A stretch of 64,000 nucleotides of DNA, taken from sequence record NC_061444.1; one strand, given 5' to 3'. This document shows, one piece after another, positions 4,642 to 62,147 of the stretch. The notes under the pieces were generated by a model that was not told the DNA's origin, did no database searches, and saw only the letters and a program-made list of their open reading frames with translations. Made by a program: the position numbers and the translations under genes. Every line of letters begins with the position of its first letter. Within the stretch, counting starts at the first letter, position 1.

Positions 4642-5667
4642 TTATTCCTCCAATACTCCGCTAATCTCCGAGAACATATTTTTGTACACTAAGGAACCAT
4701 CCAGCTTGTCCAGTCTATCAACGAGAACATACAGTCTGGGTGACGTGCGAATATTAGTCCACGTCTTCTCATTACGATCAAGTCCACCAAGTGTCGGGAC
4801 AATGACTATGCTGAGATTTTTGTTTGCCCTGACGAAGCCTACGTCGATGTGCTTCCTGTTTATACTCCTGAACAGCCTGTTGATTGCGTCCAAACCTACA
4901 GGCCGATTAAATTCCGTATCACTGACTGTATTGACTAAGCTGATGAGTATCCCTTTGTCCTTACCTTCGATCTCAAACAACGCAGCTTTCAGGTCAGCAA
5001 CCGTCGAAGCAGAGAAGTATGAAACATCGTGGTTATAGTCCTTGAGACAACTGCCGAGCGCACGGGCAGATTCGATATGCGCAGCATTGTCATCTCTAAG
5101 GATATACACAGGAGCGTCTGCTTGGTAAGTCCGAGCAGCCATGAGATTGATAAGATCACAAGAGGGCTTGCCTACTGTGGCTAAGCCCTTATTTGCAATG
5201 AAAAACTTATCTTTGTACACATCGTAAATGTTTGGTGGCATGTACTTCATGTAATCATCGTCCAGACTAAGAATCATTCGAGGCTTAGTTAACTGGACGA
5301 CGAGTTGCATACTGCGAAGTGATGCCCTATATTCCGTATCAGATAAAACTCGACTAATCGGAAGGTATTGTACGACAACGAATCGGTCATCAATCGAATC
5401 GACAACCGAACGTATGAGCGTACTGCCTAGCGAGGGACCGGCAGAGAATTGGGTAACGAGCATCAAGCTATCTTCAACTAAGCCTTTAGACTCTGACAGC
5501 GTGATACCGTTACCCGTTTGCTTTACCGAACGCTCCCACGTTATTGTGGGGTCGTCTCGCTGATCGGCATGTACATCAATTGCGCTACACCAGAGACAGG
5601 CTCCAAGAATGTAAGCAGCAATACGTTGTCTGGATCTGCTTCTGCCGGGTTGACGGTTTCCGGCCAT
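4642..5667 (-). CDS. Exported protein resembling type I periplasmic-binding / ABC substrate-binding-like sensor domains
   Basis: Signal-peptide-like N-terminus (RQRIAAYILGACLWCSAIDVHA); KPRMILSLDDDYMKY and VYILRDD...STVADLKAALFEI resemble ABC_sub_bind-type domains (recognition by eye). Confidence 0.5.
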   Translation of the reverse strand: MAGNRQPGRSRSRQRIAAYILGACLWCSAIDVHADQRDDPTITWERSVKQTGNGITLSESKGLVEDSLMLVTQFSAGPSLGSTLIRSVVDSIDDRFVVVQYLPISRVLSDTEYRASLRSMQLVVQLTKPRMILSLDDDYMKYMPPNIYDVYKDKFFIANKGLATVGKPSCDLINLMAARTYQADAPVYILRDDNAAHIESARALGSCLKDYNHDVSYFSASTVADLKAALFEIEGKDKGILISLVNTVSDTEFNRPVGLDAINRLFRSINRKHIDVGFVRANKNLSIVIVPTLGGLDRNEKTWTNIRTSPRLYVLVDRLDKLDGSLVYKNMFSEISGVLEE

Positions 5668-6365
5668 AGGACTTCTCCTCTCTCGTCAGTGACGTAAGGA
5701 ATGCCTGCCCCTTTGCCCAATCCATGACGCAAAGCCCATACTGTGTCGGCATTCTCTTGCACAAACACAAGCCCTTTAACCGTTGCCTCGCCAGTCGCGT
5801 TTTCCAGTGCAGTGACGCGCGAAGTAAGTAACTGTGCGTCAGACTGAATAGTTCGAATCGCAGCGAGGTTCGAGTTAACGCGCTGGTTCATGTTGTTAAA
5901 CATGGTGAAGAACGAGTTGTTCATCGCCGTGCGAACGCCGTCCGTATAGGACTTAGGAATCAGCTCATCGTTGTCAAACGTTGTCACGCCTGTACGAACG
6001 AGAACTTTACCGGTAAGACGTCCACCACTTGCGCTGATAATCTGAGGCGCTGGCAAATCAGCTTCGTCCCAGACTTGAACAGTGGTCATCACCGTGTTGT
6101 AGTCAGTCTCTTCCTGCCACGTATTTTTGTACGGAGCAGTAGCAGTCTTAGACTTACGGCGCAGAACTTTTTTATAGTTAGCGCTCGTGCCGTCTGCGAT
6201 AATCCAGAGACCGTTCAGTGGAAAGACATGCGTAACAGGTTCGGCGAACGCTAAGATGATCATAACGTCTGCGCTTACCTTGTACACGATATTGTTCGAC
6301 GCTGACAGACCTTGCTGCTGGGCAAGACTAATCAACGTGTCCACGTAGTTAGTCAACTGGCTCAT
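5541..6365 (-). CDS. Virion structural protein with C-terminal W-x-x-x-HGLG domain
   Basis: 274 aa; short coiled coil then VWALRHGLG...EVLWP domain paralogous to 723..1319. Confidence 0.7.
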   Translation of the reverse strand: MSQLTNYVDTLISLAQQQGLSASNNIVYKVSADVMIILAFAEPVTHVFPLNGLWIIADGTSANYKKVLRRKSKTATAPYKNTWQEETDYNTVMTTVQVWDEADLPAPQIISASGGRLTGKVLVRTGVTTFDNDELIPKSYTDGVRTAMNNSFFTMFNNMNQRVNSNLAAIRTIQSDAQLLTSRVTALENATGEATVKGLVFVQENADTVWALRHGLGKGAGIPYVTDERGEVLWPETVNPAEADPDNVLLLTFLEPVSGVAQLMYMPISETTPQ

Positions 6366-10795: not shown

Positions 10796-12814
10796 TTATG
10801 CAAAGACCACGTTCGAGATCGAGATATAGTCCATATTAACACCGTCACCCCTATCCCAACTTGAGGTAACGTAGAACCAGATTTCTTCACCTGCTGCAAT
10901 GTCTACAGGGACGTTGAATGTCTGGATGTTGCGGTTATTTCCCGGAACGAATGTGAAGCCAGGGTTAGAGCGCTCACTCCATGTGATACCACTATGGAAC
11001 GAACCCTGTTTACCTGTGTACGCGATGTTGACTGTAACCTGAGTAATGCGACGTGTGAAGAAGTTGTTGAACTTGAACCAACCCTTCGAGCCACCCCAGA
11101 GAACACCGTAGTCACCGTCCTGCACTCGTACTTGCGACCAGAAGTTACCAAAGCCACGGCCACCAGTATGCTCAATCTCGTAGCAGTACCACGGGAATGG
11201 ATCAGCTTCTGGAGGCTGCGCGTTGCCACCTTCGATTGTCACACAACGATAAGGAACAGTGAAGTCACTCACGTTAATCTTAGGAGGCTGAATAGGACAG
11301 TACACAAAGTACGACCAATCACATCCGATAGGTGCTGTCACGCGAACTGTGATGTTAGCGCGAAGCACATGCTCAGGGTATTTCCAAAATTCGAGTGTGC
11401 CTGTACGACCCGCTGCAACGATTGACGTATCAAGCAGAGTCATGTTCTGGTCAAACACTTCGAACTTGGTATCAAACGAGTTCGCTACACAAACAACAAG
11501 CCCGGCGCGAATGTCCGTCTGAGTTCCTAATGCAAAATTATCTTCTGTGGTTGGATGGCCAGCAGAGTACACGCTATAACTCTGGCAAGGGTGCATGTAT
11601 TCACGCGCACCACGTTCGCCCGGGCAGTAGAGACTGTAGAAGCAACTCGCAAGTGATGAAGCATTACCAAAGTCTTTACTGACGACGCGCACCATGATAT
11701 CACACGCAACGCCTTTCGGGTCAAAGTAGAAATACAGATAACCCTCGCCGGTCTTCGCATCAAGTGTGGTAGCGATACGCTGGCCACCCTGATAGACCTC
11801 GATGAAGTCGAACGTATCCCATGACGTGTAATCGAGATACATCCAACCTGCAATCCAGCCGATGAAGTGATAGTATTCAAACGCGTTAGCATTCTGAATA
11901 CGCTCAGTAATAGGCCAGACTGTTGCGTGACACGGTGCTGGGAAGATTGGGCTACCGATATAATCAGGATGAATGACGTCAGGGAAGTTGATAACGTCAT
12001 ATGCAGCTTGACTATCGAGGGCCAACCCACCACGGTCAGACGGTGCAGAAAGACGAGGCGGATATACTTCTAAGCTCCAGCTATATCCCTGCGTTGTGCG
12101 CACACGTACCATGATACGCATATCAGCAGCGTCAGGGTCGAACTGGAATTTGATACGAGAGCGACCTGTCAGCTTGCCACACGTTGAAGCAACACGCACA
12201 CCCATGTGATACACATCGACGCTTGCACCAGCAGGCGCATACGAGGCAATCATCAGCTCGACATAACCTTCGATAGCTGGCATTGCATAATACGTTTCAG
12301 TGACAACAGCACCACGTCCGTGAACAGACGCATATGGTACGTTGGGGTTAGCATAGGTACCTAGCCCTGCACGAGAAGCAACACCAGTAGGGTCGTATGA
12401 TTCGATGGCCTTGATGCCGGGGCGATTGAGAGATCGACCAGTAGGAGGAGCAAAAGAGTTGACAAGACCGAAGCCAGTGCGACCAGCATCAGGCAGGTCA
12501 AACCCTGCAGGATAGCCTGTAAGGATATCGTACTTCTCACGACCGCCACTCCCTATGCCGTTGCCGGAGCCTTTGGTTGTTGACGTAGGACCGCCACCAC
12601 ACGCGCCCGTTTCGAGATTCGAACACGGGTCATCGTATGTAGGGTCAAACGAGTCATCAATGTGATGCCAACGCTGACCCCACTGGTTACGCACACTGAA
12701 CTTCTCTGGAGTTAAAGGTGTCCAGTCTCCAGCATGTGTGCGTATGAACATGGGCGTGTCCACACAGTCATGCCAACCGTTATTCGCAGCATTACGAACG
12801 CGAAAACGAGACAT
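10796..12814 (-). CDS. Fibre-associated protein with three tandem beta-sandwich repeats
   Basis: 672 aa; three repeats of about 100 aa (VDVYHMGVRVAST / IEVYQGGQRIATT / FEVFDQNMTLLDT); possible C-terminal carbohydrate-binding module. Confidence 0.65.
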   Translation of the reverse strand: MSRFRVRNAANNGWHDCVDTPMFIRTHAGDWTPLTPEKFSVRNQWGQRWHHIDDSFDPTYDDPCSNLETGACGGGPTSTTKGSGNGIGSGGREKYDILTGYPAGFDLPDAGRTGFGLVNSFAPPTGRSLNRPGIKAIESYDPTGVASRAGLGTYANPNVPYASVHGRGAVVTETYYAMPAIEGYVELMIASYAPAGASVDVYHMGVRVASTCGKLTGRSRIKFQFDPDAADMRIMVRVRTTQGYSWSLEVYPPRLSAPSDRGGLALDSQAAYDVINFPDVIHPDYIGSPIFPAPCHATVWPITERIQNANAFEYYHFIGWIAGWMYLDYTSWDTFDFIEVYQGGQRIATTLDAKTGEGYLYFYFDPKGVACDIMVRVVSKDFGNASSLASCFYSLYCPGERGAREYMHPCQSYSVYSAGHPTTEDNFALGTQTDIRAGLVVCVANSFDTKFEVFDQNMTLLDTSIVAAGRTGTLEFWKYPEHVLRANITVRVTAPIGCDWSYFVYCPIQPPKINVSDFTVPYRCVTIEGGNAQPPEADPFPWYCYEIEHTGGRGFGNFWSQVRVQDGDYGVLWGGSKGWFKFNNFFTRRITQVTVNIAYTGKQGSFHSGITWSERSNPGFTFVPGNNRNIQTFNVPVDIAAGEEIWFYVTSSWDRGDGVNMDYISISNVVFA

Positions 12815-12823
12815 GCTTTCTCC

Positions 12824-13315
12824 TTAAGGACGGACCCAAATACTTCCGGGTGGAATCTCCTGATCTAACGCAGGGTCAGAATCTTGAACGAAGACAGCCA
12901 CGACTCCTGGGTTTCCTGGTGCACCAGTAGGACCAGTAGCACCAGTAGGACCCGCAGGACCACGAAGACCAAGATAGCCTTGCTTGCCTTGCTGACCATC
13001 ACTGCCTCGTGGCCCCGGACAACCATCAGTGCCTCGACGACCATCTTTACCCATCAGGCCGTCGATACCATCACGACCGGAAGGACCTACGCCACCAGCA
13101 GGACCATAGCCGATGCTGTGAATAGTTGGCAGTCCTGCAATTTGCAGTTTGCCGATATTGGGTATGTTGATTGCGAGCACACCAGTAAGCGCATCGAATG
13201 CACCATTGAGTGTGCTATCGTCTTCTGACGTGTCAACGTTAATCCCACCTTGAGTCGCTACAACAGGACCAGACGCGTTGGCCTTGATAAGCGATATATC
13301 AACCTTCTCCACCAT
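12824..13315 (-). CDS. Collagen-like fibre protein (paralogue 3)
   Basis: Gly-X-Y run; FDALTGVL...GLPT pre-domain; ends PGSIWVRP. Confidence 0.85.
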   Translation of the reverse strand: MVEKVDISLIKANASGPVVATQGGINVDTSEDDSTLNGAFDALTGVLAINIPNIGKLQIAGLPTIHSIGYGPAGGVGPSGRDGIDGLMGKDGRRGTDGCPGPRGSDGQQGKQGYLGLRGPAGPTGATGPTGAPGNPGVVAVFVQDSDPALDQEIPPGSIWVRP

Positions 13316-13324
13316 GATTACTCC

Positions 13325-13957
13325 TTACGGCCAGGTAGTGCCTTGATCTTTTGTAGGGTCTACCCACACGGTGCCGGGTGCGACATTTCCGGGCTGGGTA
13401 GCACTCACGATGATAGACAGACGACCAGCAGGACCTGCTGCACCAGTAGGACCAGTTGGGCCAGTAGCGCCAGTTGCTCCTGTAGGGCCTGTACCGCCAC
13501 GAGGGCCGGTAGGACCAGTAGGCCCCATAGGACCTGTGCGACCATCTGGGCCAGTAGGACCGACAGGACCCGGCAGACCATCACGACCATCCGGCCCAGG
13601 AAGACCCTGCTCGCCGTCAGGACCTACCTCACCGTCACAGCCCTGTTCGCCCGGGTTTCCATCACGACCATCACGACCGTCTTTACCATCAGCGCCTGTC
13701 TCACCCCTGCTGCCTTGACGACCTTCAGGGATATCAGATGCAGTAGGGAATCCACCTACTTTGACTGACTGACCGTTAGCGAACTTGAGAGTAAGAATAC
13801 CCGAAGTCGCATCGAATGACGAATCAGCAGTTATCTCTGACGGTACATCAGCATCGTTCTGGTCTATTGTCAGAACGCCAGACTGAGCACGAATTGCAGT
13901 AGCAGTAGTCGAAGAACCAGCCTGAATGAGACCGGTCTTAACTTTAATCAGACTCAT
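13325..13957 (-). CDS. Collagen-like fibre protein (paralogue 2)
   Basis: Long Gly-X-Y run rich in GPT/GAT; FDATSGIL...GFPT pre-domain; ends PGTVWVDP. Confidence 0.85.
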   Translation of the reverse strand: MSLIKVKTGLIQAGSSTTATAIRAQSGVLTIDQNDADVPSEITADSSFDATSGILTLKFANGQSVKVGGFPTASDIPEGRQGSRGETGADGKDGRDGRDGNPGEQGCDGEVGPDGEQGLPGPDGRDGLPGPVGPTGPDGRTGPMGPTGPTGPRGGTGPTGATGATGPTGPTGAAGPAGRLSIIVSATQPGNVAPGTVWVDPTKDQGTTWP

Positions 13958-15396
13958 TACGTTTTCTCCGCTTTCGCAACAATATCCGTGTTGTGTGCGA
14001 GCACATCACCAACGAAGTAGCAATCAAATGGGTCAACGTCGATATCGACTGTCTTCACTTGAGCATCTATGCGTCGGAACTCGTATACAGCAACAGGTCC
14101 TTTGCGACCCAAAACAGTTTGTCCAGCTTGCACATCACGCGCAGGAACATAACGCCACACGCTGTCATCGTAAATCAAGACAGGGTGTTCGTGCGTGAAC
14201 TTCTGTCCGTTGATAACGTAGTAATGATCTTCTTCGCCGTATTTTAATCCGACGACTGTAGCGTTTACAAGATTACCTTTCAGACTCGGTGAAGACCACT
14301 GACGGAAGTTCTTAGGCTGATTAGAGAAGCTGCGCAAGCTATCGCCCACACGCAAGTCCTCGACAGCTTTAGGTCCTGTGATTGTTTCAACCTCAGAACC
14401 AAACACGATACAGCCAGACGCTTTGTTGATAGGGTTACGTGCCACAACAGTCAGAGCAGAACTCACTGTGACAGTTGGACGTGACGTTTGCCCCATGTCA
14501 GTTACTACGCAACGGATAGTGCCTTTGATTACTCGATCAGCACCAAGTCCGAGACGCAGATAGAAGTTAACGACACAGGTTGAGGATGTTGTCGCACTGA
14601 GCGTTACACCCTCTGTAGTTGTGATAGTCCACTGATACTTATAGGGACCAACACCACCACGCGCGTTAACAGGCAGATACGCAAGCGAAGTAAACACATC
14701 AGAACCCTGTACTGCACGTTGACCAACCATGTACAGACTTGATACTGACGCAGCAAGAGGTGTTATCGTAGGCAGAGGCGGCGCAGGGGTAACGTTGTTC
14801 GTCGGGTATAACCACACAAACACTTTACCATCCGTAGGCTGCGTACTTGACAGCACGGCAGTAGTGATAGGCGCTGGGCCTGTAGGACCTGTTGCACCAG
14901 CAATACAGCTTGGACCCGTGTTGCCACGAGGACCACGTATGCCGGGAGGACCCTCAGGACCGTCTGGGCCTGTAGGGCCATCAGGACCCATGCGACCAGT
15001 ATCACCCTGAGGACCGTCTTCGCCGTCACGTCCGGGATCACCTACAGGTCCAGTCTTGCCTCTGTTGCCAACTTTGCCTTGACAGCCGGGACGCCCTGTT
15101 TCACCGTCACGACCATCTCGTCCATCACGGCCAGGAGCACCGGGAGCGCCTCGACGCCCCGGTTTACCTTCACCGAACATAGCTACAGTAGGAAGTCCGG
15201 GAACGTTAATCACATCCCCGTTCTTCTTGATGAACACCAACACACCTGTCTTGCTGTTAAATCTTACGCTTGCGAGTTGTGTAAGAGCAGCAGTGTCCGA
15301 TTGTTCGAACTGTGCGCTACCACCAACACCCACCAGCGACTTACCTTCATCGTTGGCGGTTGTTTCGATTTGCGAAAGTTTTAACTGTGTTGTCAT
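13957..15396 (-). CDS. Collagen-like fibre protein (paralogue 1) with a beta-sandwich domain and C-terminal Hint domain
   Basis: Gly-X-Y run, FNSKTGVL...GLPT pre-domain, Ig-like middle, then CIVFGSEV...THEHP...LAHN-T. Confidence 0.85.
13990..14412 (-). other. Intein-like Hint domain (141 aa, no endonuclease)
   Basis: Cys1 (TGT at 14410-14412), block B T-x-x-H-P (FTHEHPV), block F Asp region (TVDIDV...YFVG), terminal His-Asn followed by Thr. Confidence 0.85.
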
Positions 15397-24525: not shown

Positions 24526-24575
24526 GATATTCTCCTCTGTTAGGCACAAATTAGCTTGTTATGCAGTAGAAACGA

Positions 24576-24604
24576 AAACGGGCGACCCGAAGGCCACCCG
24601 CTTT
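24576..24604 (-). terminator. Rho-independent terminator of the small structured RNA
   Basis: Minus strand GCGGGTGGCC-TTCG-GGTCGCCCGT-TTTCGTTTCT. Confidence 0.85.
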
Positions 24605-24804
24605 CTATGCTTGGATTTGTGTCGCTTACTCCCTCACACCCGAAGCGAGTGCCCGGTAGCCGAAGCTACTAAGCTGGAGTGACTGACCGAGAGTGAAGCC
24701 GCATCAAACGGCAACTGTAAGTGACTCTCGGAACATGATAGCAAACGACCAAGCATCGCAATTGCTATCAGCGACACGTAGAACAAAATCATGTTTGCTC
24801 CTTG
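24605..24804 (-). ncRNA. Putative compact multi-stem, pseudoknotted RNA of unknown class
   Basis: Three perfect 8-bp stems (GTGTCGCT/AGCGACAC, GATAGCAA/TTGCTATC, CCGAGAGT/ACTCTCGG), a cUUCGg hairpin, an 8-bp loop-to-tail pairing (ATGCTTGG/CCAAGCAT), own promoter and terminator; G.U pairs favour the minus strand. Confidence 0.7.
24634..24792 (-). CDS. Possible 52-aa hydrophobic peptide encoded inside the structured RNA
   Basis: AAGGAG RBS 5 nt before ATG; MILFYVSLIAIAMLGRLLSCSESHLQLPFDAASLSVSHSSLVASATGHSLRV; below the ORF-track length cut-off. Confidence 0.35.
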   Translation of the reverse strand: MILFYVSLIAIAMLGRLLSCSESHLQLPFDAASLSVSHSSLVASATGHSLRV

Positions 24805-24811
24805 TGTCTCT

Positions 24812-24840
24812 ACTGTAAGTAAAACATTTGCAAATGTCGA
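24812..24840 (-). promoter_or_regulatory. Sigma70-like promoter with a 14-bp palindrome across the spacer
   Basis: TCGACA-N17-TACAGT on the minus strand; perfect palindrome ACATTTGCAAATGT at 24824-24837. Confidence 0.55.
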
Positions 24841-24849
24841 TCAAGTTAC

Positions 24850-25810
24850 TTCGAGTTGCCCTTCGCCCAACATCACTAGGGTTTCAACTCTCTTTCTCTC
24901 TTTACCGCCTGGGCTGCGGAAACCGCACACAAGAACAACACATCAAGGACACACGGCGGAAAAGTGAAAAAGTTCCGTATGCCCTAACAGCATCGCTCAA
25001 GCGAAGGAGGTGACCCATCGGTGATCTGCGGTGGTTGATACACTCTTTAACAATCGCTCTTGTTGTGCATTAGATCGTGGTAGGAACGCGATTGACCGCT
25101 AACAAGTCCTATACGATATTTCACTACCCGGAAAAGTGGGCAAGCTATGGCAGCACGTCAACGGCAGCATGGCGCGGACACACTCCATTGAACATTGTTA
25201 AGGGCAATGCTCAACAGGCTGTGTACAGCTTTGACCAAACGCAGAGTCGCTCGTCGCCCAACATCACTTGAGTATCTCGTCTACGTTCTTTTACTCCCTA
25301 GATACCGTGAAAAGGCACGGCACCCATGAGGGTCGCGGATGTTTATCACATTAAGACTCTTACAGTTCAATCCTGTACGCAGTGTGTTGAGTCGTCCGCT
25401 GGATGACACACTACATACCCTCACCGTGTTGTACATCGGTAGGAAAGAGCTGGTGGAATTGTCATGGAGAGTAGATATCTCCCCAATGCACACTGTTATT
25501 GCCAGCCAGTGTGCATCAGGCAGCGTAACTGCGAACTGCTGTCCCTAAAAGAGTGGCCACAACGCTGAGAATACGTTCTACCAGTCTACGTGCCTAGAGG
25601 CTGCTGCCGTGCTATGTCGTAAAGATGAAAAGAACTGGGCCTTGTGGGCGTCAGCGGCAGAGCAACAGTCTATCACGTGGGTGCCGGGGTTGTCCTCACG
25701 ATTACAGAGCATAAGCTCAAACCGGCTGGAGGCTCACATGCCGCCAAGAAATACAGCGCGTGAGTTTATGGACCAGCAAGAGACTGCCCGCGAAGTAAGT
25801 CTCTTGCTAC
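24850..25810 (+). ncRNA. Putative large (~950 nt) structured RNA of unknown class
   Basis: No convincing CDS; more than a dozen hairpins and long-range helices, including 10- and 11-bp perfect stems; G.U pairs mostly favour the plus strand. Confidence 0.55.
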
Positions 25811-25848
25811 AACTTGATATTACTATCTGCAATTTTTATTTACAGATT

Positions 25849-27612
25849 TTAAAACGCTTTACGTTCGATATTCGAATATAAAGTTTCATACGGCTCAGAG
25901 TACAGTTCAGGACCGCGTTGAGCGCGTACAGTCACGTAACCAGTGTGACGGTTGAAGTCAGTGATTTCGACTGTAGGCTGTTTAGGCTTGAGAGTCGCAT
26001 AAATAGGAGCGTTCAGAGTTGGTTCGTCTGTCTGAATCTTATTTACAGATTGCAGAGCAGCGCCTGAAAGCGTAGGCAGCTTGAATCGCAGTTCAGCACG
26101 TTTCTGTCCGAACGCTGCGCGAATCATACCGTTTTCCAGCTTCACACCGTTCTGCTTGAGATATGCAGCGATGCGACGACCGATACCCGTAAGCTGATCG
26201 CGAGTGCGTGGGTCGAACGTACCTTCGAAGCTGATTGCTTCTTCCGGTTGACGTACAGACAGATGCAGACCTGTGTTGAAGTAACCTTCGGTCAGAAGAC
26301 GAAGCACTTCTTTGACAACCTCTTTCGTGTTCTGATTGATAGCAGCAACACGCAGCTCAGGCACGTCTACTTTGATCGGGTCACGCAGTTCGGTCTGGTT
26401 GTCCATGTAGCCGAGTGAAATGTGTTTCGCATTGGCATACGTATGCTGCAACACACCAGTAGCGCGAATCAACACAGAGCCGCCTTTAGCGAGGTCATAC
26501 AGTTCATCGCTGGTGGTTGTGCTGAACAGATAGTAGTCTGTAGGCACTGCCATGCGATTAACAGCTTCAACCGCTTTCGTCTGCGCTTCTTTCACAGTCT
26601 TACCGAAGACAACACGACTACGGTTAGGCTGAGAGGCAGACACAGGGAAGAACGCACCGTAAACAGCCTGCACGTTTTTCTTAATAGGCTGATCAGAAGC
26701 AATCTTCTTACCGCCAGCGAGCGGAGGCAGCTTAACGCCCACCAGCTTACCTTTGACGATATGCTTGTTTTCTTTAACAGGCTTGAGACTGTCGATCAGC
26801 TTAGACAGTGACGCACCATCGAGAATCTTCTCAAGCGGAACAACAAGGTTCTGCGGCAGATAGTGTTTCTTGCGATACGTGTAGATAACGGTGTCTTTCT
26901 TGACCTGCAAAGGCGTAGCCATATTGCGACCAACAACACCGACAGGCTGGAACGTGTTTGCTCTGTCGTTAGCGATTGAGCCAAACTGTTTAGTGAACTC
27001 AGTCTGACCGATGATGTTAGCGACACGCAGATGACCACGAACGATAAACACAATCTTCGGTTCATCTTTCAGGCGCAACTCGTAGCGGTCACGGTTCAGA
27101 TAAACCAGGCTGTACTTGTCGCCCTTCTCCAGCTCAAGGTCATACTCGTCGTTAGCGTCATCGACAACGACTTTCTTACCCTGATACGTAGCGTAAGTGC
27201 GAGCACCGGCAGACTCAGAAGCGATCTGCATTGCCTTACCGGTATTAGATAGCGATGCAGCGAAGTCACGCACGGCTGGCATCAGGTCGAATGAAGACGC
27301 TACAGAATACGGTTCGCGCTTATCGCCAAGATGCAGATGCACGGCGCTTGTGCTGGACATGAAGACTGTTGTACCTACATCTTCGTGCTTACCAGCAAAG
27401 TTCAGGCCGCTGATACGTTCGATGGTATTCGCATTCAGTGATTCGAAGCGTACATCGCTACCAGCAGCGAAGTCAAAGATTTCACCGTGACGCCAAGCAT
27501 AGGCAACGTTGCTGGAGCTAAGGCCAACAAACGCATCGCCAATTCGGCTGACGGTTAACGGCATGATACTCAGATCACGAATGATCGAGGACTGCTTTTT
27601 AATGAGGTTCAT
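25849..27612 (-). CDS. Hypothetical protein, candidate internal head protein (587 aa)
   Basis: Contains the ~65-aa domain shared with three other ORFs (TYATYQGKKV...KGDKYSL), preceded by SES-A. Confidence 0.7.
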   Translation of the reverse strand: MNLIKKQSSIIRDLSIMPLTVSRIGDAFVGLSSSNVAYAWRHGEIFDFAAGSDVRFESLNANTIERISGLNFAGKHEDVGTTVFMSSTSAVHLHLGDKREPYSVASSFDLMPAVRDFAASLSNTGKAMQIASESAGARTYATYQGKKVVVDDANDEYDLELEKGDKYSLVYLNRDRYELRLKDEPKIVFIVRGHLRVANIIGQTEFTKQFGSIANDRANTFQPVGVVGRNMATPLQVKKDTVIYTYRKKHYLPQNLVVPLEKILDGASLSKLIDSLKPVKENKHIVKGKLVGVKLPPLAGGKKIASDQPIKKNVQAVYGAFFPVSASQPNRSRVVFGKTVKEAQTKAVEAVNRMAVPTDYYLFSTTTSDELYDLAKGGSVLIRATGVLQHTYANAKHISLGYMDNQTELRDPIKVDVPELRVAAINQNTKEVVKEVLRLLTEGYFNTGLHLSVRQPEEAISFEGTFDPRTRDQLTGIGRRIAAYLKQNGVKLENGMIRAAFGQKRAELRFKLPTLSGAALQSVNKIQTDEPTLNAPIYATLKPKQPTVEITDFNRHTGYVTVRAQRGPELYSEPYETLYSNIERKAF

Positions 27613-60800: not shown

Positions 60801-62147
60801 GTTGATGTTGCTCAGGTCAGGCATGTTCACAGTGTAGTCACGGATAGCTAAGTGTTTCAGCCCCGTTGTAGGACGCGCTGCGTAATAGAACAGACGGTCA
60901 TACGTATCTTCCTGCGTATATGGCGGCGTCAGGAGTTCAACGTAAGGCCAACCAGAGCGTGTCTGCGTAGGACTGTCAGCAGAGGCAAAGTCAAACAGCG
61001 CATTGCTACCGTTCGTGTCCATACCTGAAACTAACTTACCACCAGCAGCAGTCCAAGCAGCAGTCGTGTTGAACACAACGAGGTCGTTAGCAACAAGAGG
61101 ACGAGCAGCAACGTTCTGTACGTTGTCACGGATATTGAACTGATAGACGTTAGTACCGTCGTGACCGAAGACGAGTAACGAACTCGGTACGAACTGATAC
61201 CAGAACACGTACGCAGGAGCAGCAGCCGTGTTACCACCCACCAGCTTACCATCAAGCGTTGACAGCACATCATAACTGTCAGAGCCGTTAACATAGAACT
61301 GGTCTGACTTAACAGACGTTTCAATGAACGAGGCATTCAGGTAATGCGCACGTCCATCTACATCAAACGCAACGTAGCTATCTACAGTGTTAGCACCAAC
61401 GCCAGCACGACGACACACAACACGGTTGACCTGATATCCGAGTTGCTTTGGTTCACCGAACTGCGTCATAGCTTCGTCAAGAACATCTACTTGCCCTGAC
61501 TTGTGGAACACTACAGCACTGCGTTTGCCTGTTGAGTCGTAACTGACTTTATAGCCTGCGATATCAACGTCATACATACCGCCGAACACTTTTGTATTCG
61601 ACACATCACCATCAGTGTGAATGTAATACAGCGTACGGGCTGCACGGTCATGGACGATTGATACGGGTTTAGTCAGGTCGAAGAAGGTAGATTCGAAGTC
61701 CGAGAACTTTGCAACACTACCTTGCTGCATGTCTTGAACAGTGGGAATACGAACGCCACCGCCAAGCACAAGACCGCCATACGTAGGATTGATTGCAGCG
61801 CCCAATGGCATTGCATCCATACCACGAGTAACCAGACGATAATCCAGCTCTTTCGTTTGCGGCCTGACAAAGATGCGAGACATAGAATGCACAAGCACCC
61901 ACAAGTCACCGTCTTTGTAATAGAGCAGCACAGGTTGTGTAGCAGAGGCAGCAACTGTCACGTTAGCCAGAAGACTAATCGGATATACTGAACCTGAACT
62001 CGGTGCGATATCCTTTTCTGTGGTAGCATCATCAAACGTACCGCCAACAACACGGAACGTCAGAGCGTCAGTATGGCTCTGGATAGTTACGTTACCAGAC
62101 CACGACTGCGCACCAGTAGCTGATACTACAGGAATCATTTCAGCCAT
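57822..62147 (-). CDS. Large modular virion structural protein (1441 aa)
   Basis: Beta-rich N-terminus, ADDTPNAFAW...VTISGINV module, acidic tandem repeats, Pro-rich segment, Cys-terminated C-terminus. Confidence 0.75.
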   Translation of the reverse strand: MAEMIPVVSATGAQSWSGNVTIQSHTDALTFRVVGGTFDDATTEKDIAPSSGSVYPISLLANVTVAASATQPVLLYYKDGDLWVLVHSMSRIFVRPQTKELDYRLVTRGMDAMPLGAAINPTYGGLVLGGGVRIPTVQDMQQGSVAKFSDFESTFFDLTKPVSIVHDRAARTLYYIHTDGDVSNTKVFGGMYDVDIAGYKVSYDSTGKRSAVVFHKSGQVDVLDEAMTQFGEPKQLGYQVNRVVCRRAGVGANTVDSYVAFDVDGRAHYLNASFIETSVKSDQFYVNGSDSYDVLSTLDGKLVGGNTAAAPAYVFWYQFVPSSLLVFGHDGTNVYQFNIRDNVQNVAARPLVANDLVVFNTTAAWTAAGGKLVSGMDTNGSNALFDFASADSPTQTRSGWPYVELLTPPYTQEDTYDRLFYYAARPTTGLKHLAIRDYTVNMPDLSNINLGPSVTFKVTVDAGDPDIALPITAPAGVTVAATIDVTTTDIVDGKEVTTTTTVPVTKVYDGQEVTITLSHAFITSTSFPVSIGRSVYQFEMKADDTPNAFAWQNILGVDNDTWNRTEDVTISGINVAVPVSVLIDGQEDYDRVKIFVDGVETAMPVLIRNNQKLGFEILHENNTSRIDVDVGKGTSRFGIYTIVEAQIDVGRHWAYMPIGKEVKSDVFKNTGTVPLTLTIDSPEGAVFANGSTTVTVPVNGTSSIKFTPTENKQYTIKFHSDQFSYEWYVWADAEWLGTPAPTKRAERYVMGDSDTLFIDNIPDNFWTYFTVPAGMLLDVDGVRVVVDLDSRGVYKEQGLVMGPFECADTMLKIYGLPSHDQPHTLMFGNAPFGWLYDMTVDPSYSAYATDSVQIFDVTPQDAVNEAVAIVDKTFIGTGTHSVNLEPVYDPELDEQLQWNDFEQGQTHASEPVAREVDAGAATNEQIIAGHQFVQGNVENPQVVAGPQFDMGQKDFVDNFRMFDLIARSDIVIDKFDLFELTQGQKDVITTMPLPSFVDNTDSVTSDTFPLFELTVGQEDTVTDFPLFEATVGQEDTVTDFPLFEATVGQEDTVTDFPLFEATVGDDAVSDSFSAAFVEGPGIVVDTFLPDFTEELYAVSDTFINNFVENIDLAPQYFDLRSPEYRTLTKAKPDQILPKFADDKAIYPVDALGASKVDNLGLYDGGCTQPRLTFASGLYQQEVTEAQYVHPSAVYQIGWARPQWVPVTMTYQVDAHVAKYVDPIYHPAVLFMPEIPFVRRMDAPVYYHCAPLESQWAKEPVQYPVSPAPSDFYHLKAVAGQHESFDPHTVDTPTVYTHLIEGKFIQSSQSGKTEELGTRQVNTAKVIPVARKAGNPVTPKPISVEIHKTRRSTSKPYAVLAPVVEAWTVEPNHGSIDKPLEEGYFATELDALQNATQVWGFDPSVVYAIQQPNGYWTWAQVTVCEESCGSMSCAARGYLSGG
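58957..59126 (-). repeat. 48-bp in-frame tandem repeat (about 3.5 copies; FPLFEATVGQEDTVTD)
   Basis: Units start at 58957, 59005, 59053 and 59101; first two identical, later ones diverge at synonymous sites. Confidence 0.9.

Follow-up and report, generated by a model that had tools for sequence, protein, structure and literature searches.

The subject of this analysis is gp111, a collagen-like protein with a Hint domain at its C-terminus, which is encoded within a 64,000-nucleotide stretch of DNA (the window) from Erwinia phage pEa_SNUABM_32 (NC_061444.1), an Alexandravirus jumbo myovirus with a genome of 265,891 bp; base 1 of the window is base 62,001 of that record. The gene occupies positions 13957–15396 on the minus strand, on which all parts of it described below lie, and its open reading frame codes for 479 amino acids annotated in the record as a “virion structural protein,” with a match to PHROG 38766 over the full length. 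It is set in a tail module, with a 779-residue protein that has a weak tail-collar match in its N-terminal part on one side and two smaller collagen-like genes on the other.

Several distinct parts can be recognized in gp111. The N-terminal domain (residues 1–76; 15169–15396) is common, by alignment, to the products of both downstream collagen-like genes, and AlphaFold2 assigns strands to it with predicted local distance difference test scores (pLDDT) of 50–78. It is followed by a collagen-like Gly-X-Y region (residues 77–175; 14872–15168), matched by the Pfam Collagen model with E=8e-15 and marked by invariant glycine columns in the orthologue alignment, so that the collagen-like fibre proposed in a first-pass annotation made from the sequence alone is borne out. 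Glycine recurs at every third residue from 77 to 161, Cys164 takes the next such position, and glycine resumes at 167, 170, and 173. Next come a neck (residues 176–214; 14755–14871), the motif of which recurs in alignments at the C-termini of both paralogues, and a β-sandwich resembling an immunoglobulin (Ig) domain (residues 215–321; 14434–14754), modeled by AlphaFold2 as all-β with pLDDT of 85–93 and showing a weak SprB-repeat match. A linker (residues 322–328; 14413–14433) ends in Gly328, the −1 residue of the predicted N-terminal scissile bond, which is nearly invariant in orthologues. The remainder consists of the 141-residue Hint domain from Cys329 to Asn469 (13990–14412), assigned from Pfam, phmmer, alignment, AlphaFold2, Foldseek, and substitution rates, and a 10-residue C-terminal tail from Thr470 to Thr479 (13960–13989), delimited by alignments and including Lys475 and Lys478. 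The coding range of Hint plus tail is thus 13960–14412, as 13957–13959, which the first-pass annotation had counted in, is the stop codon.

Identity, conservation, and presence or absence of the Hint domain

The residues expected of an active Hint domain are present in gp111. Cys329 (codon 14412–14410) directly follows Gly328, residues T401-H-E-H404 correspond to the T-x-x-H motif of block B, His468-Asn469 close the domain, and Thr470 occupies the +1 position. The earlier description of a 141-residue Hint domain within the last 151 residues, with Cys1, T-x-x-H, a penultimate His, a terminal Asn, and a 10-residue C-terminal flank, is confirmed by these residues and by Pfam, phmmer, AlphaFold2, and Foldseek. 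The profile search for a Hint or intein model that had been suggested along with it returned Pfam PT-HINT (PF07591), which matches the 151-residue piece with E=2.1e-6 and 28.5 bits (cut-off 27.7); Pfam Hint_2 matches the N-terminal part. An NCBIfam search of gp111 gave no model covering the Hint part, and Pfam gave no match in gp111 to the Peptidase S74 domain (PF13884).

Comparisons with known structures point to the same family. The top phmmer match in the PDB is 2lwy_A, a bacterial intein-like (BIL) domain, with E=2.5e-6 over residues 3–141. The AlphaFold2 model of gp111, which drew on 33 relatives, has pLDDT of about 90 over residues 329–470, with values below 50 for the collagen part and the final eight residues. 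Foldseek returned 44 PDB matches at E≤1e-3, of which 2LWY came first (E=9e-9, template modeling score 0.79) and BIL2 (6Y75/6TMM) second (E of about 1e-7), followed by mini-inteins and Hedgehog 1AT0. The fold, the N-terminal Cys, and the T-x-x-H of block B place the domain in the Hint superfamily. Its further properties are those by which A-type BILs are recognized: a His-Asn end, no obligatory +1 nucleophile, small size without an endonuclease, a variable non-housekeeping host protein, and nearest relatives that are themselves BILs. On sequence and modeled structure, the grouping of the gp111 Hint with A-type bacterial intein-like domains, and not with homing inteins, is therefore supported. 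The earlier proposals that the domain is bacterial intein-like, A-type, and domesticated, and that it lacks a homing endonuclease and resides in a structural protein, find agreement in the closest matches (2LWY and BIL2), in a length of 141 residues that leaves no room for an endonuclease, and in the nature of the host, a collagen-like virion fibre.

Conservation among orthologues is extensive. A word-indexed protein search gave orthologues in 23 clusters, 52–91% identical and all 476–490 residues long; full-length orthologues in phage records are found in 48 Erwinia phage records, in Dickeya phage AD1, and in Yersinia phage fHe-Yen9-02, with more distant relatives in Alcaligenes phage Afa-NA1, Salmonella phage Sen-NF, and phage NCTB. 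In an alignment of 16 orthologues (39–89% identical), Cys329, Thr401, Glu403, His404, Pro405, His468, Asn469, Asp471, and Lys478 are invariant, and Cys329, Thr401, His468, and Asn469 remain so in a wider set of 33. The +1 residue is mostly Thr, with Ser, Ala, Val, or Met in other orthologues. The ratio of nonsynonymous to synonymous substitution rates for the Hint part is 0.10–0.19, as low as in the structural parts, these ratios being rough as synonymous sites are near saturation. Judged from these comparisons, selection maintains the catalytic set of the Hint domain but not a +1 nucleophile, the combination by which A-type BILs are defined (PMC4031507).

Conservation of the tail is more difficult to interpret. 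The gene is translationally coupled to the next (13955–13969), as read from the sequence: a GGAG at 13966–13969, within the codons of Ala476 and Glu477, precedes by eight bases the ATG of the next gene (13955–13957), which overlaps the gp111 stop codon (13957–13959) by one base. Synonymous divergence in the tail is unusually low among orthologues. Preservation of the ...AEK end in close orthologues is thus partly a nucleotide constraint imposed by the ribosome-binding site of the next gene and, because of that site and the low synonymous divergence there, tail conservation in close orthologues is not counted here as protein-level evidence.

Examination of the presence or absence of the Hint in orthologues, a comparison also proposed in the first-pass annotation, found that related phages either have or lack the linker, Hint, and tail together, as one unit. 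Dickeya JA phages (Salmondvirus) carry a syntenic 324-residue orthologue (JA29 gp099) that matches residues 1–322 of gp111 and stops five residues short of where Cys1 would be, so that the linker, the Hint, and the tail are all missing together. As this orthologue stops just past the Ig-like domain, that domain probably forms the distal tip of the mature fibre and, because it ends five residues before the junction, mature gp111 probably consists of residues 1–328. A complementary case is provided by a 672-residue protein encoded nearby (10796–12814, minus strand), in which no Hint is found by Pfam; the homologue in phage NCTB, a protein of 1304 residues with 35% identity (E=4e-76), ends in poly-Gly, Cys, a Hint domain, His-Asn, and seven further residues. 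Because the JA orthologue of gp111 is Hint-less and the NCTB homologue of the Hint-less 672-residue protein is Hint-capped, sequence comparison indicates that tail proteins of this lineage gain and lose the cap as a module and that the fibre works without it. Such a pattern speaks against both the insertion of an intein into an already existing sequence and a requirement for the tail in the mature fibre.

Two further observations concern these relatives. Orthologues of the 672-residue protein are named “large intein domain protein” in phages Yoloswag and Afa-NA1 (L004 6524–8450; L002 7619–8845), and the label seems to have been carried over from the Hint-ended NCTB homologue; a Hint in the 672-residue protein itself was considered and rejected on the Pfam result. 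Phage NCTB has three Hint units in its module (L009 798–1259; L003 2569–6483), namely the gp111 orthologue, with a seven-residue tail ending in two lysines; a free-standing 153-residue Hint reading frame right after it, with a three-residue tail beginning with Lys; and the 1304-residue protein with its Hint at the end.

A family of C-terminal Hint caps with lysine in their tails

The architecture of gp111 recurs widely. Searching 1.84 billion representative sequences with the Hint domain as query gave 408 proteins at E≤1e-3, and the family counts that follow refer to the best 150 of these. His-Asn is present in 149 of the 150. In at least 110 proteins the Hint lies at the extreme C-terminus, followed by a tail of 1–19 residues (12 or fewer in 97 of them), and no member of this short-tail set ends at the Asn; at least one residue always follows. 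That the terminal Asn is always kept and that something always comes after it suggest that the C-terminal junction matters and that the tail joins the reaction. Among the 70 short-tail members in which the N-terminal junction is covered, 68 have Cys1, and glycine is found at −1, −2, −3, and −4 in 48, 34, 39, and 36 of those 68, respectively.

The N-terminal parts of the family members include collagen, tail-collar fibre, fn3, Ig, PKD, BACON, and similar domains, and in BFVD most fold matches are proteins of this type from uncultured Caudovirales. Each of the four genomic contexts inspected is a tail or baseplate module of a phage: a jumbo-phage contig of 311 kb in which the gene order is the same, an HP1/P2-like Shewanella prophage, a P2-like tail module, and a myovirus module. 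In the last of these, from a metagenomic myovirus (L011 5541–8089), a fibre capped by an S74 domain is encoded directly upstream of a Hint-capped protein. Some family members (P0044, P0054, P0087, and P0095) contain Hint domains in tandem, separated by very short spacers made up of one Lys, a few Gly, and the next Cys1, so that each spacer holds both a lysine and a glycine acyl donor.

The most striking regularity in the tails is their lysine content, which was evaluated in the 106 short tails that are left when close orthologues of gp111 are excluded. Lysine is present in 101 of these 106, compared with about 26 expected from composition and a mean of 27 (maximum 41 in 1000 trials) for random windows drawn from the same proteins; whole-protein composition and random-window chance are accordingly rejected as its source. 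A general C-terminal or ribosome-binding-site codon bias is rejected as well: Lys occurs in 32% of length-matched C-terminal windows taken from 102 other phage open reading frames, and the highest value among 2000 resamples was 47%. Lysine accounts for 12.9% of the residues in the tails, compared with 3.6% overall, without any enrichment of arginine. Exactly one Lys is present in 96 of the 106 tails, and in 59 of the 101 with lysine it is the last or next-to-last residue; several tails consist of a lone Lys. Among the 39 members with more sequence after the Hint, the +1 residue is Lys in 21, and a protein search from a second seed (12 matches) added four complete new short-tail members, all of them with Lys. 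These tails share ancestry and do not represent independent events; they vary in length, however, and share no other feature.

Ser, Thr, or Cys occupies the first tail position in 13 of the 106 tails, and lysine is present with or without one of these residues at +1. The first-pass annotation had considered the domain to look competent for splicing on account of its +1 Thr; this residue is indeed found in gp111, but it is not conserved among orthologues or in the wider family. Because the +1 residue varies in this way (Thr, Ser, Ala, Val, or Met in orthologues) and 13 of 106 family tails begin with Ser, Thr, or Cys, canonical class 1 splicing is, by these counts, not the activity that has been conserved by selection. 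What the lysine statistics favour is some role for the tail lysine, which may be that of a nucleophile or of a handle that keeps the tail docked.

Proposed chemistry and competing explanations

The preferred reading, to which a probability of about 0.65 is given, is that the last 151 residues of gp111 are a domesticated A-type BIL/Hint module that caps the C-terminus of a collagen-like tail fibre or whisker protein and acts a single time, removing itself from the chain of which it is part. Given the invariant residues and the known chemistry of Hint domains (PMC4031507), Cys329, aided by the Thr401/His404 block, would turn the Gly328–Cys329 peptide bond into a thioester, while Asn469, aided by His468, would cyclize and sever the bond to the 10-residue tail. 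The fibre acyl group would go either to a tail amine or to water. If to an amine, the acceptor could be the tail α-amine freed by Asn cyclization, as proposed for A-type BILs (PMC4031507), or the ε-amine of the conserved tail lysine, as reported for Tetrahymena BIL2 (PMC8616854). The 141-residue Hint would then depart, leaving a mature fibre of residues 1–328 with an Ig-like end and with the decapeptide attached or not. We infer both the occurrence and the timing of this cleavage from sequence. The likeliest purpose of the cap, by analogy, would be to assist or hold back the folding and assembly of the fibre tip, as does the unrelated S74 chaperone, a C-terminal module on trimeric phage fibres that cuts itself off after aiding assembly (PMC7824862, PMC12143355).

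Several points weigh against the self-removing cap. In the context of the full-length protein, the PT-HINT score is borderline, at 26.1 bits against a gathering cut-off of 27.7. The “virion structural protein” label is silent on which part of gp111 was detected, and the conserved catalytic residues, while attesting to selection for chemistry, are likewise silent on the product formed. AlphaFold2 leaves the tail unplaced (pLDDT below 50), and the usefulness of a cap is argued by analogy. Finally, the two paralogous collagen chains do without a Hint, so that the domain is not needed for collagen trimerization as such.

The alternative that survives best is a refinement of the self-removing cap and not a departure from it. 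In lysine-directed isopeptide splicing, which we regard as possible but tentative, Lys478 or Lys475 would take Gly328 from the Cys329 thioester, the branched intermediate would be resolved by cyclization of Asn469, and the decapeptide would end up on the lysine side chain. The sequence statistics are as this chemistry would predict: lysine is nearly universal and usually single in the tails, without enrichment of arginine and far above both controls, some tails are a lone Lys, the Asn is never the last residue, Gly prevails at positions −1 to −4, and all four of the new short-tail members from the second search conform. Moreover, the second-best fold match, BIL2, is the domain for which an isopeptide between Lys and the C-terminus of the N-terminal flank has been reported (PMC8616854). 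The support for it consists, however, of these statistics and one precedent. The lysine is anchored to the C-terminus and not to a fixed distance from the Asn, so that a role in docking or recognition would fit as well, and it is present irrespective of Ser, Thr, or Cys at +1. Further complicating this interpretation, the tail is unplaced in the AlphaFold2 model, the ribosome-binding site of the next gene overlaps the Glu477 and Lys478 codons in gp111, and the Hint-less JA orthologue shows that the fibre needs no such tag. A broader proposal, that phage fibres use a BIL cap for enzyme-free conjugation of a ubiquitin-like type, in which a poly-Gly thioester on Cys1 would pass to the ε-amine of the single Lys in the cap's own short tail or, in some members, to a Lys of another protein (“isopeptide splicing”), is offered with slightly greater reserve.

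Three other explanations are each unlikely. One is that the domain is a true splicing element that joins the conserved decapeptide linearly to the fibre tip, the tail being needed in the mature fibre. The Thr at +1 of gp111 would suit such a reaction, A-type BILs are able to ligate their flanks (PMC4031507), and the tail is well conserved in orthologues, with Asp471 and Lys478 invariant; that conservation is in part the nucleotide constraint described above, reflected in the ribosome-binding site and the low synonymous divergence. Ala, Val, or Met at +1 in some orthologues, the JA orthologue without a tail, and family tails of 1–19 residues that share no common sequence beyond one Lys make a role as a tag improbable.

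A second is transfer in trans of the Hedgehog or BUBL kind, in which a nucleophile on another molecule, either a lysine of a virion protein or a small molecule, would attack the Gly328 thioester and thereby anchor or modify the fibre C-terminus. BIL2 is reported to conjugate its N-terminal flank to other proteins (PMC8616854), and poly-Gly before Cys1 would be an accessible acyl donor. The strictly conserved terminal Asn and the never-absent tail point instead to chemistry of the domain with its own tail, and the Hint-less orthologue works without a transfer of this type, which leaves the idea doubtful. The possible roles put forward in the first-pass annotation were an autocleaving folding chaperone, splicing of a short tag onto the fibre, and transfer of the fibre C-terminus to another molecule. 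Self-removal fits the Hint-less orthologue and the single tail lysine favours a reaction that engages the tail, whereas transfer to another molecule is without direct support.

A third, to which little probability is likewise given, is that the Hint is a non-processing structural domain that stays in place as the distal tip of the fibre, for example as a binding module. The gene product is labeled a virion structural protein, and purifying selection by itself cannot separate catalysis from structure. Yet none of the catalytic residues varies even among deeply divergent sequences, variation is what one would expect of a binding tip, for which Cys1, T-x-x-H, and His-Asn would be superfluous, and the module is dispensable in JA phages.

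The weakest candidates, a selfish mini-intein remnant and a pretoxin Hint that releases a toxin, can appeal to the intein-like catalytic set and to PT-HINT as the best Pfam model but are highly improbable, and both the homing intein and the toxin-releasing PT-HINT are rejected, since there is no endonuclease, no conserved +1 residue, no conserved insertion site, and, in the Hint-less allele (JA29 gp099), no C-terminal flank with which the N-terminal one could be contiguous, while just 10 residues, and thus no toxin domain, follow the Hint, and none of the genes seen around gp111 is immunity-like.

The tail module, known systems, and implications

Within the tail module, gp111 is the first of three tandem collagen-like paralogues of 479, 210, and 163 residues (12824–15396, minus strand), which have in common the N-terminal domain, a Gly-X-Y region, and the C-terminal neck motif. 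The 210-residue (13325–13957) and 163-residue (12824–13315) proteins, both encoded on the minus strand and identified from open reading frames, Pfam, PHROG, and alignment, are without an Ig-like domain or a Hint, these being found on one chain of the three, gp111. One Cys within the collagen repeat (Cys105 of gp111) is invariant in all three. The three chains might form homotrimers or a single heterotrimer.

Other features of the module were noted in passing. An HNH endonuclease gene lies within the tail-fibre module at 5541–6365 (minus strand); in Yoloswag an HNH endonuclease gene is found elsewhere in the module (L004 5657–6514), between the collagen-like genes and the large protein. Because its position differs between the two phages, a mobile gene that shifts within the tail module is suggested. 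Between a PAAR-like gene and the next large gene, about 1.3 kb (approximately 24550–25850) has no open reading frame of more than about 70 amino acids on either strand, no tRNA, and no Rfam match; it is conserved at 70–89% identity in related Erwinia and Dickeya phages and includes a 33-nucleotide direct repeat (24853 and 25244) and a 17-nucleotide hairpin (25479–25523). Among the distant relatives, Alcaligenes phage Afa-NA1 (78 kb) and Salmonella phage Sen-NF (108 kb) show the same identity and near-equal scores for the tail protein despite very different recorded hosts, and their records (PV550095.1 and PV359490.1) have a tail module like that of jumbo phages.

Comparison with characterized systems indicates which aspects of gp111 are familiar and which are not. 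A-type BILs splice, with cleavage products dominating, and have no obligatory +1 nucleophile (PMC4031507). Like the BIL of Clostridium thermocellum (2LWY), the gp111 Hint has Cys1, T-x-x-H, and a C-terminal His-Asn in about 140 residues, with no endonuclease, no required +1 nucleophile, and a variable, surface-type host protein. Unlike known A-type BILs, members of the gp111 family are found on phage virion fibres, at the extreme C-terminus, with a flank of 1–19 residues that contains a single conserved Lys, and usually have poly-Gly before Cys1. BIL2 of Tetrahymena thermophila BUBL1 (6Y75, 6TMM) shares the fold, and its reported passing of the C-terminus of the N-terminal flank to a lysine ε-amine to form an isopeptide (PMC8616854) is the chemistry that the lysine-bearing tail of gp111 suggests; the BIL2 flanks, however, are ubiquitin-like and eukaryotic, and the identity is 18%.

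The Peptidase S74 chaperone resembles the Hint cap in its position on the fibre C-terminus and in presumed logic alone, as fold and chemistry are unrelated (a Ser-Lys dyad in S74, versus a Cys thioester and Asn cyclization in Hint). Pretoxin HINT (PF07591), the best Pfam model, is similar in its predicted autoproteolytic release of an adjoining part, but gp111 has 10 residues and no toxin after the Hint and lies in a phage tail module, not a toxin-immunity locus. Class 1 mini-inteins and the Hedgehog Hog domain share the fold and the first step, with the terminal His-Asn as in inteins. Class 1 inteins differ from the gp111 Hint in having a conserved +1 residue, a conserved insertion site, and a homing endonuclease, whereas the Hog domain differs in that gp111 has a conserved terminal Asn and no sterol-recognition extension.

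An intein domain has already been noted in GenBank for Y3 (Y3_110, “contains intein domain”) and for NCTB. The searchable tail-fibre literature yielded no account of phage fibres capped by Hint or BIL domains, and the searchable literature none of the family-wide architecture of poly-Gly, C-terminal Hint, and single-lysine tail. The gp111 Hint may thus be regarded as an A-type BIL in a new setting, with testable and possibly new chemistry.

The reading of the domain as a self-removing cap explains the scattered “intein domain” labels on tail genes of this phage group. If the mature fibre is, as is probable, a 328-residue protein with an Ig-like end, structure predictions and receptor-binding annotations that take the Hint as the “tip” would be wrong. 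The family signature (poly-Gly, Cys1 to His-Asn, and a short tail with one Lys) leads to the prediction that lysine serves as acyl acceptor, for which there is one reported precedent, in a ciliate; “isopeptide splicing” would, if true, be a maturation chemistry not described for viruses. More generally, should the proposed self-removal be correct, these Hint domains would constitute a second class of self-removing phage-fibre caps, unrelated to the S74 chaperone.

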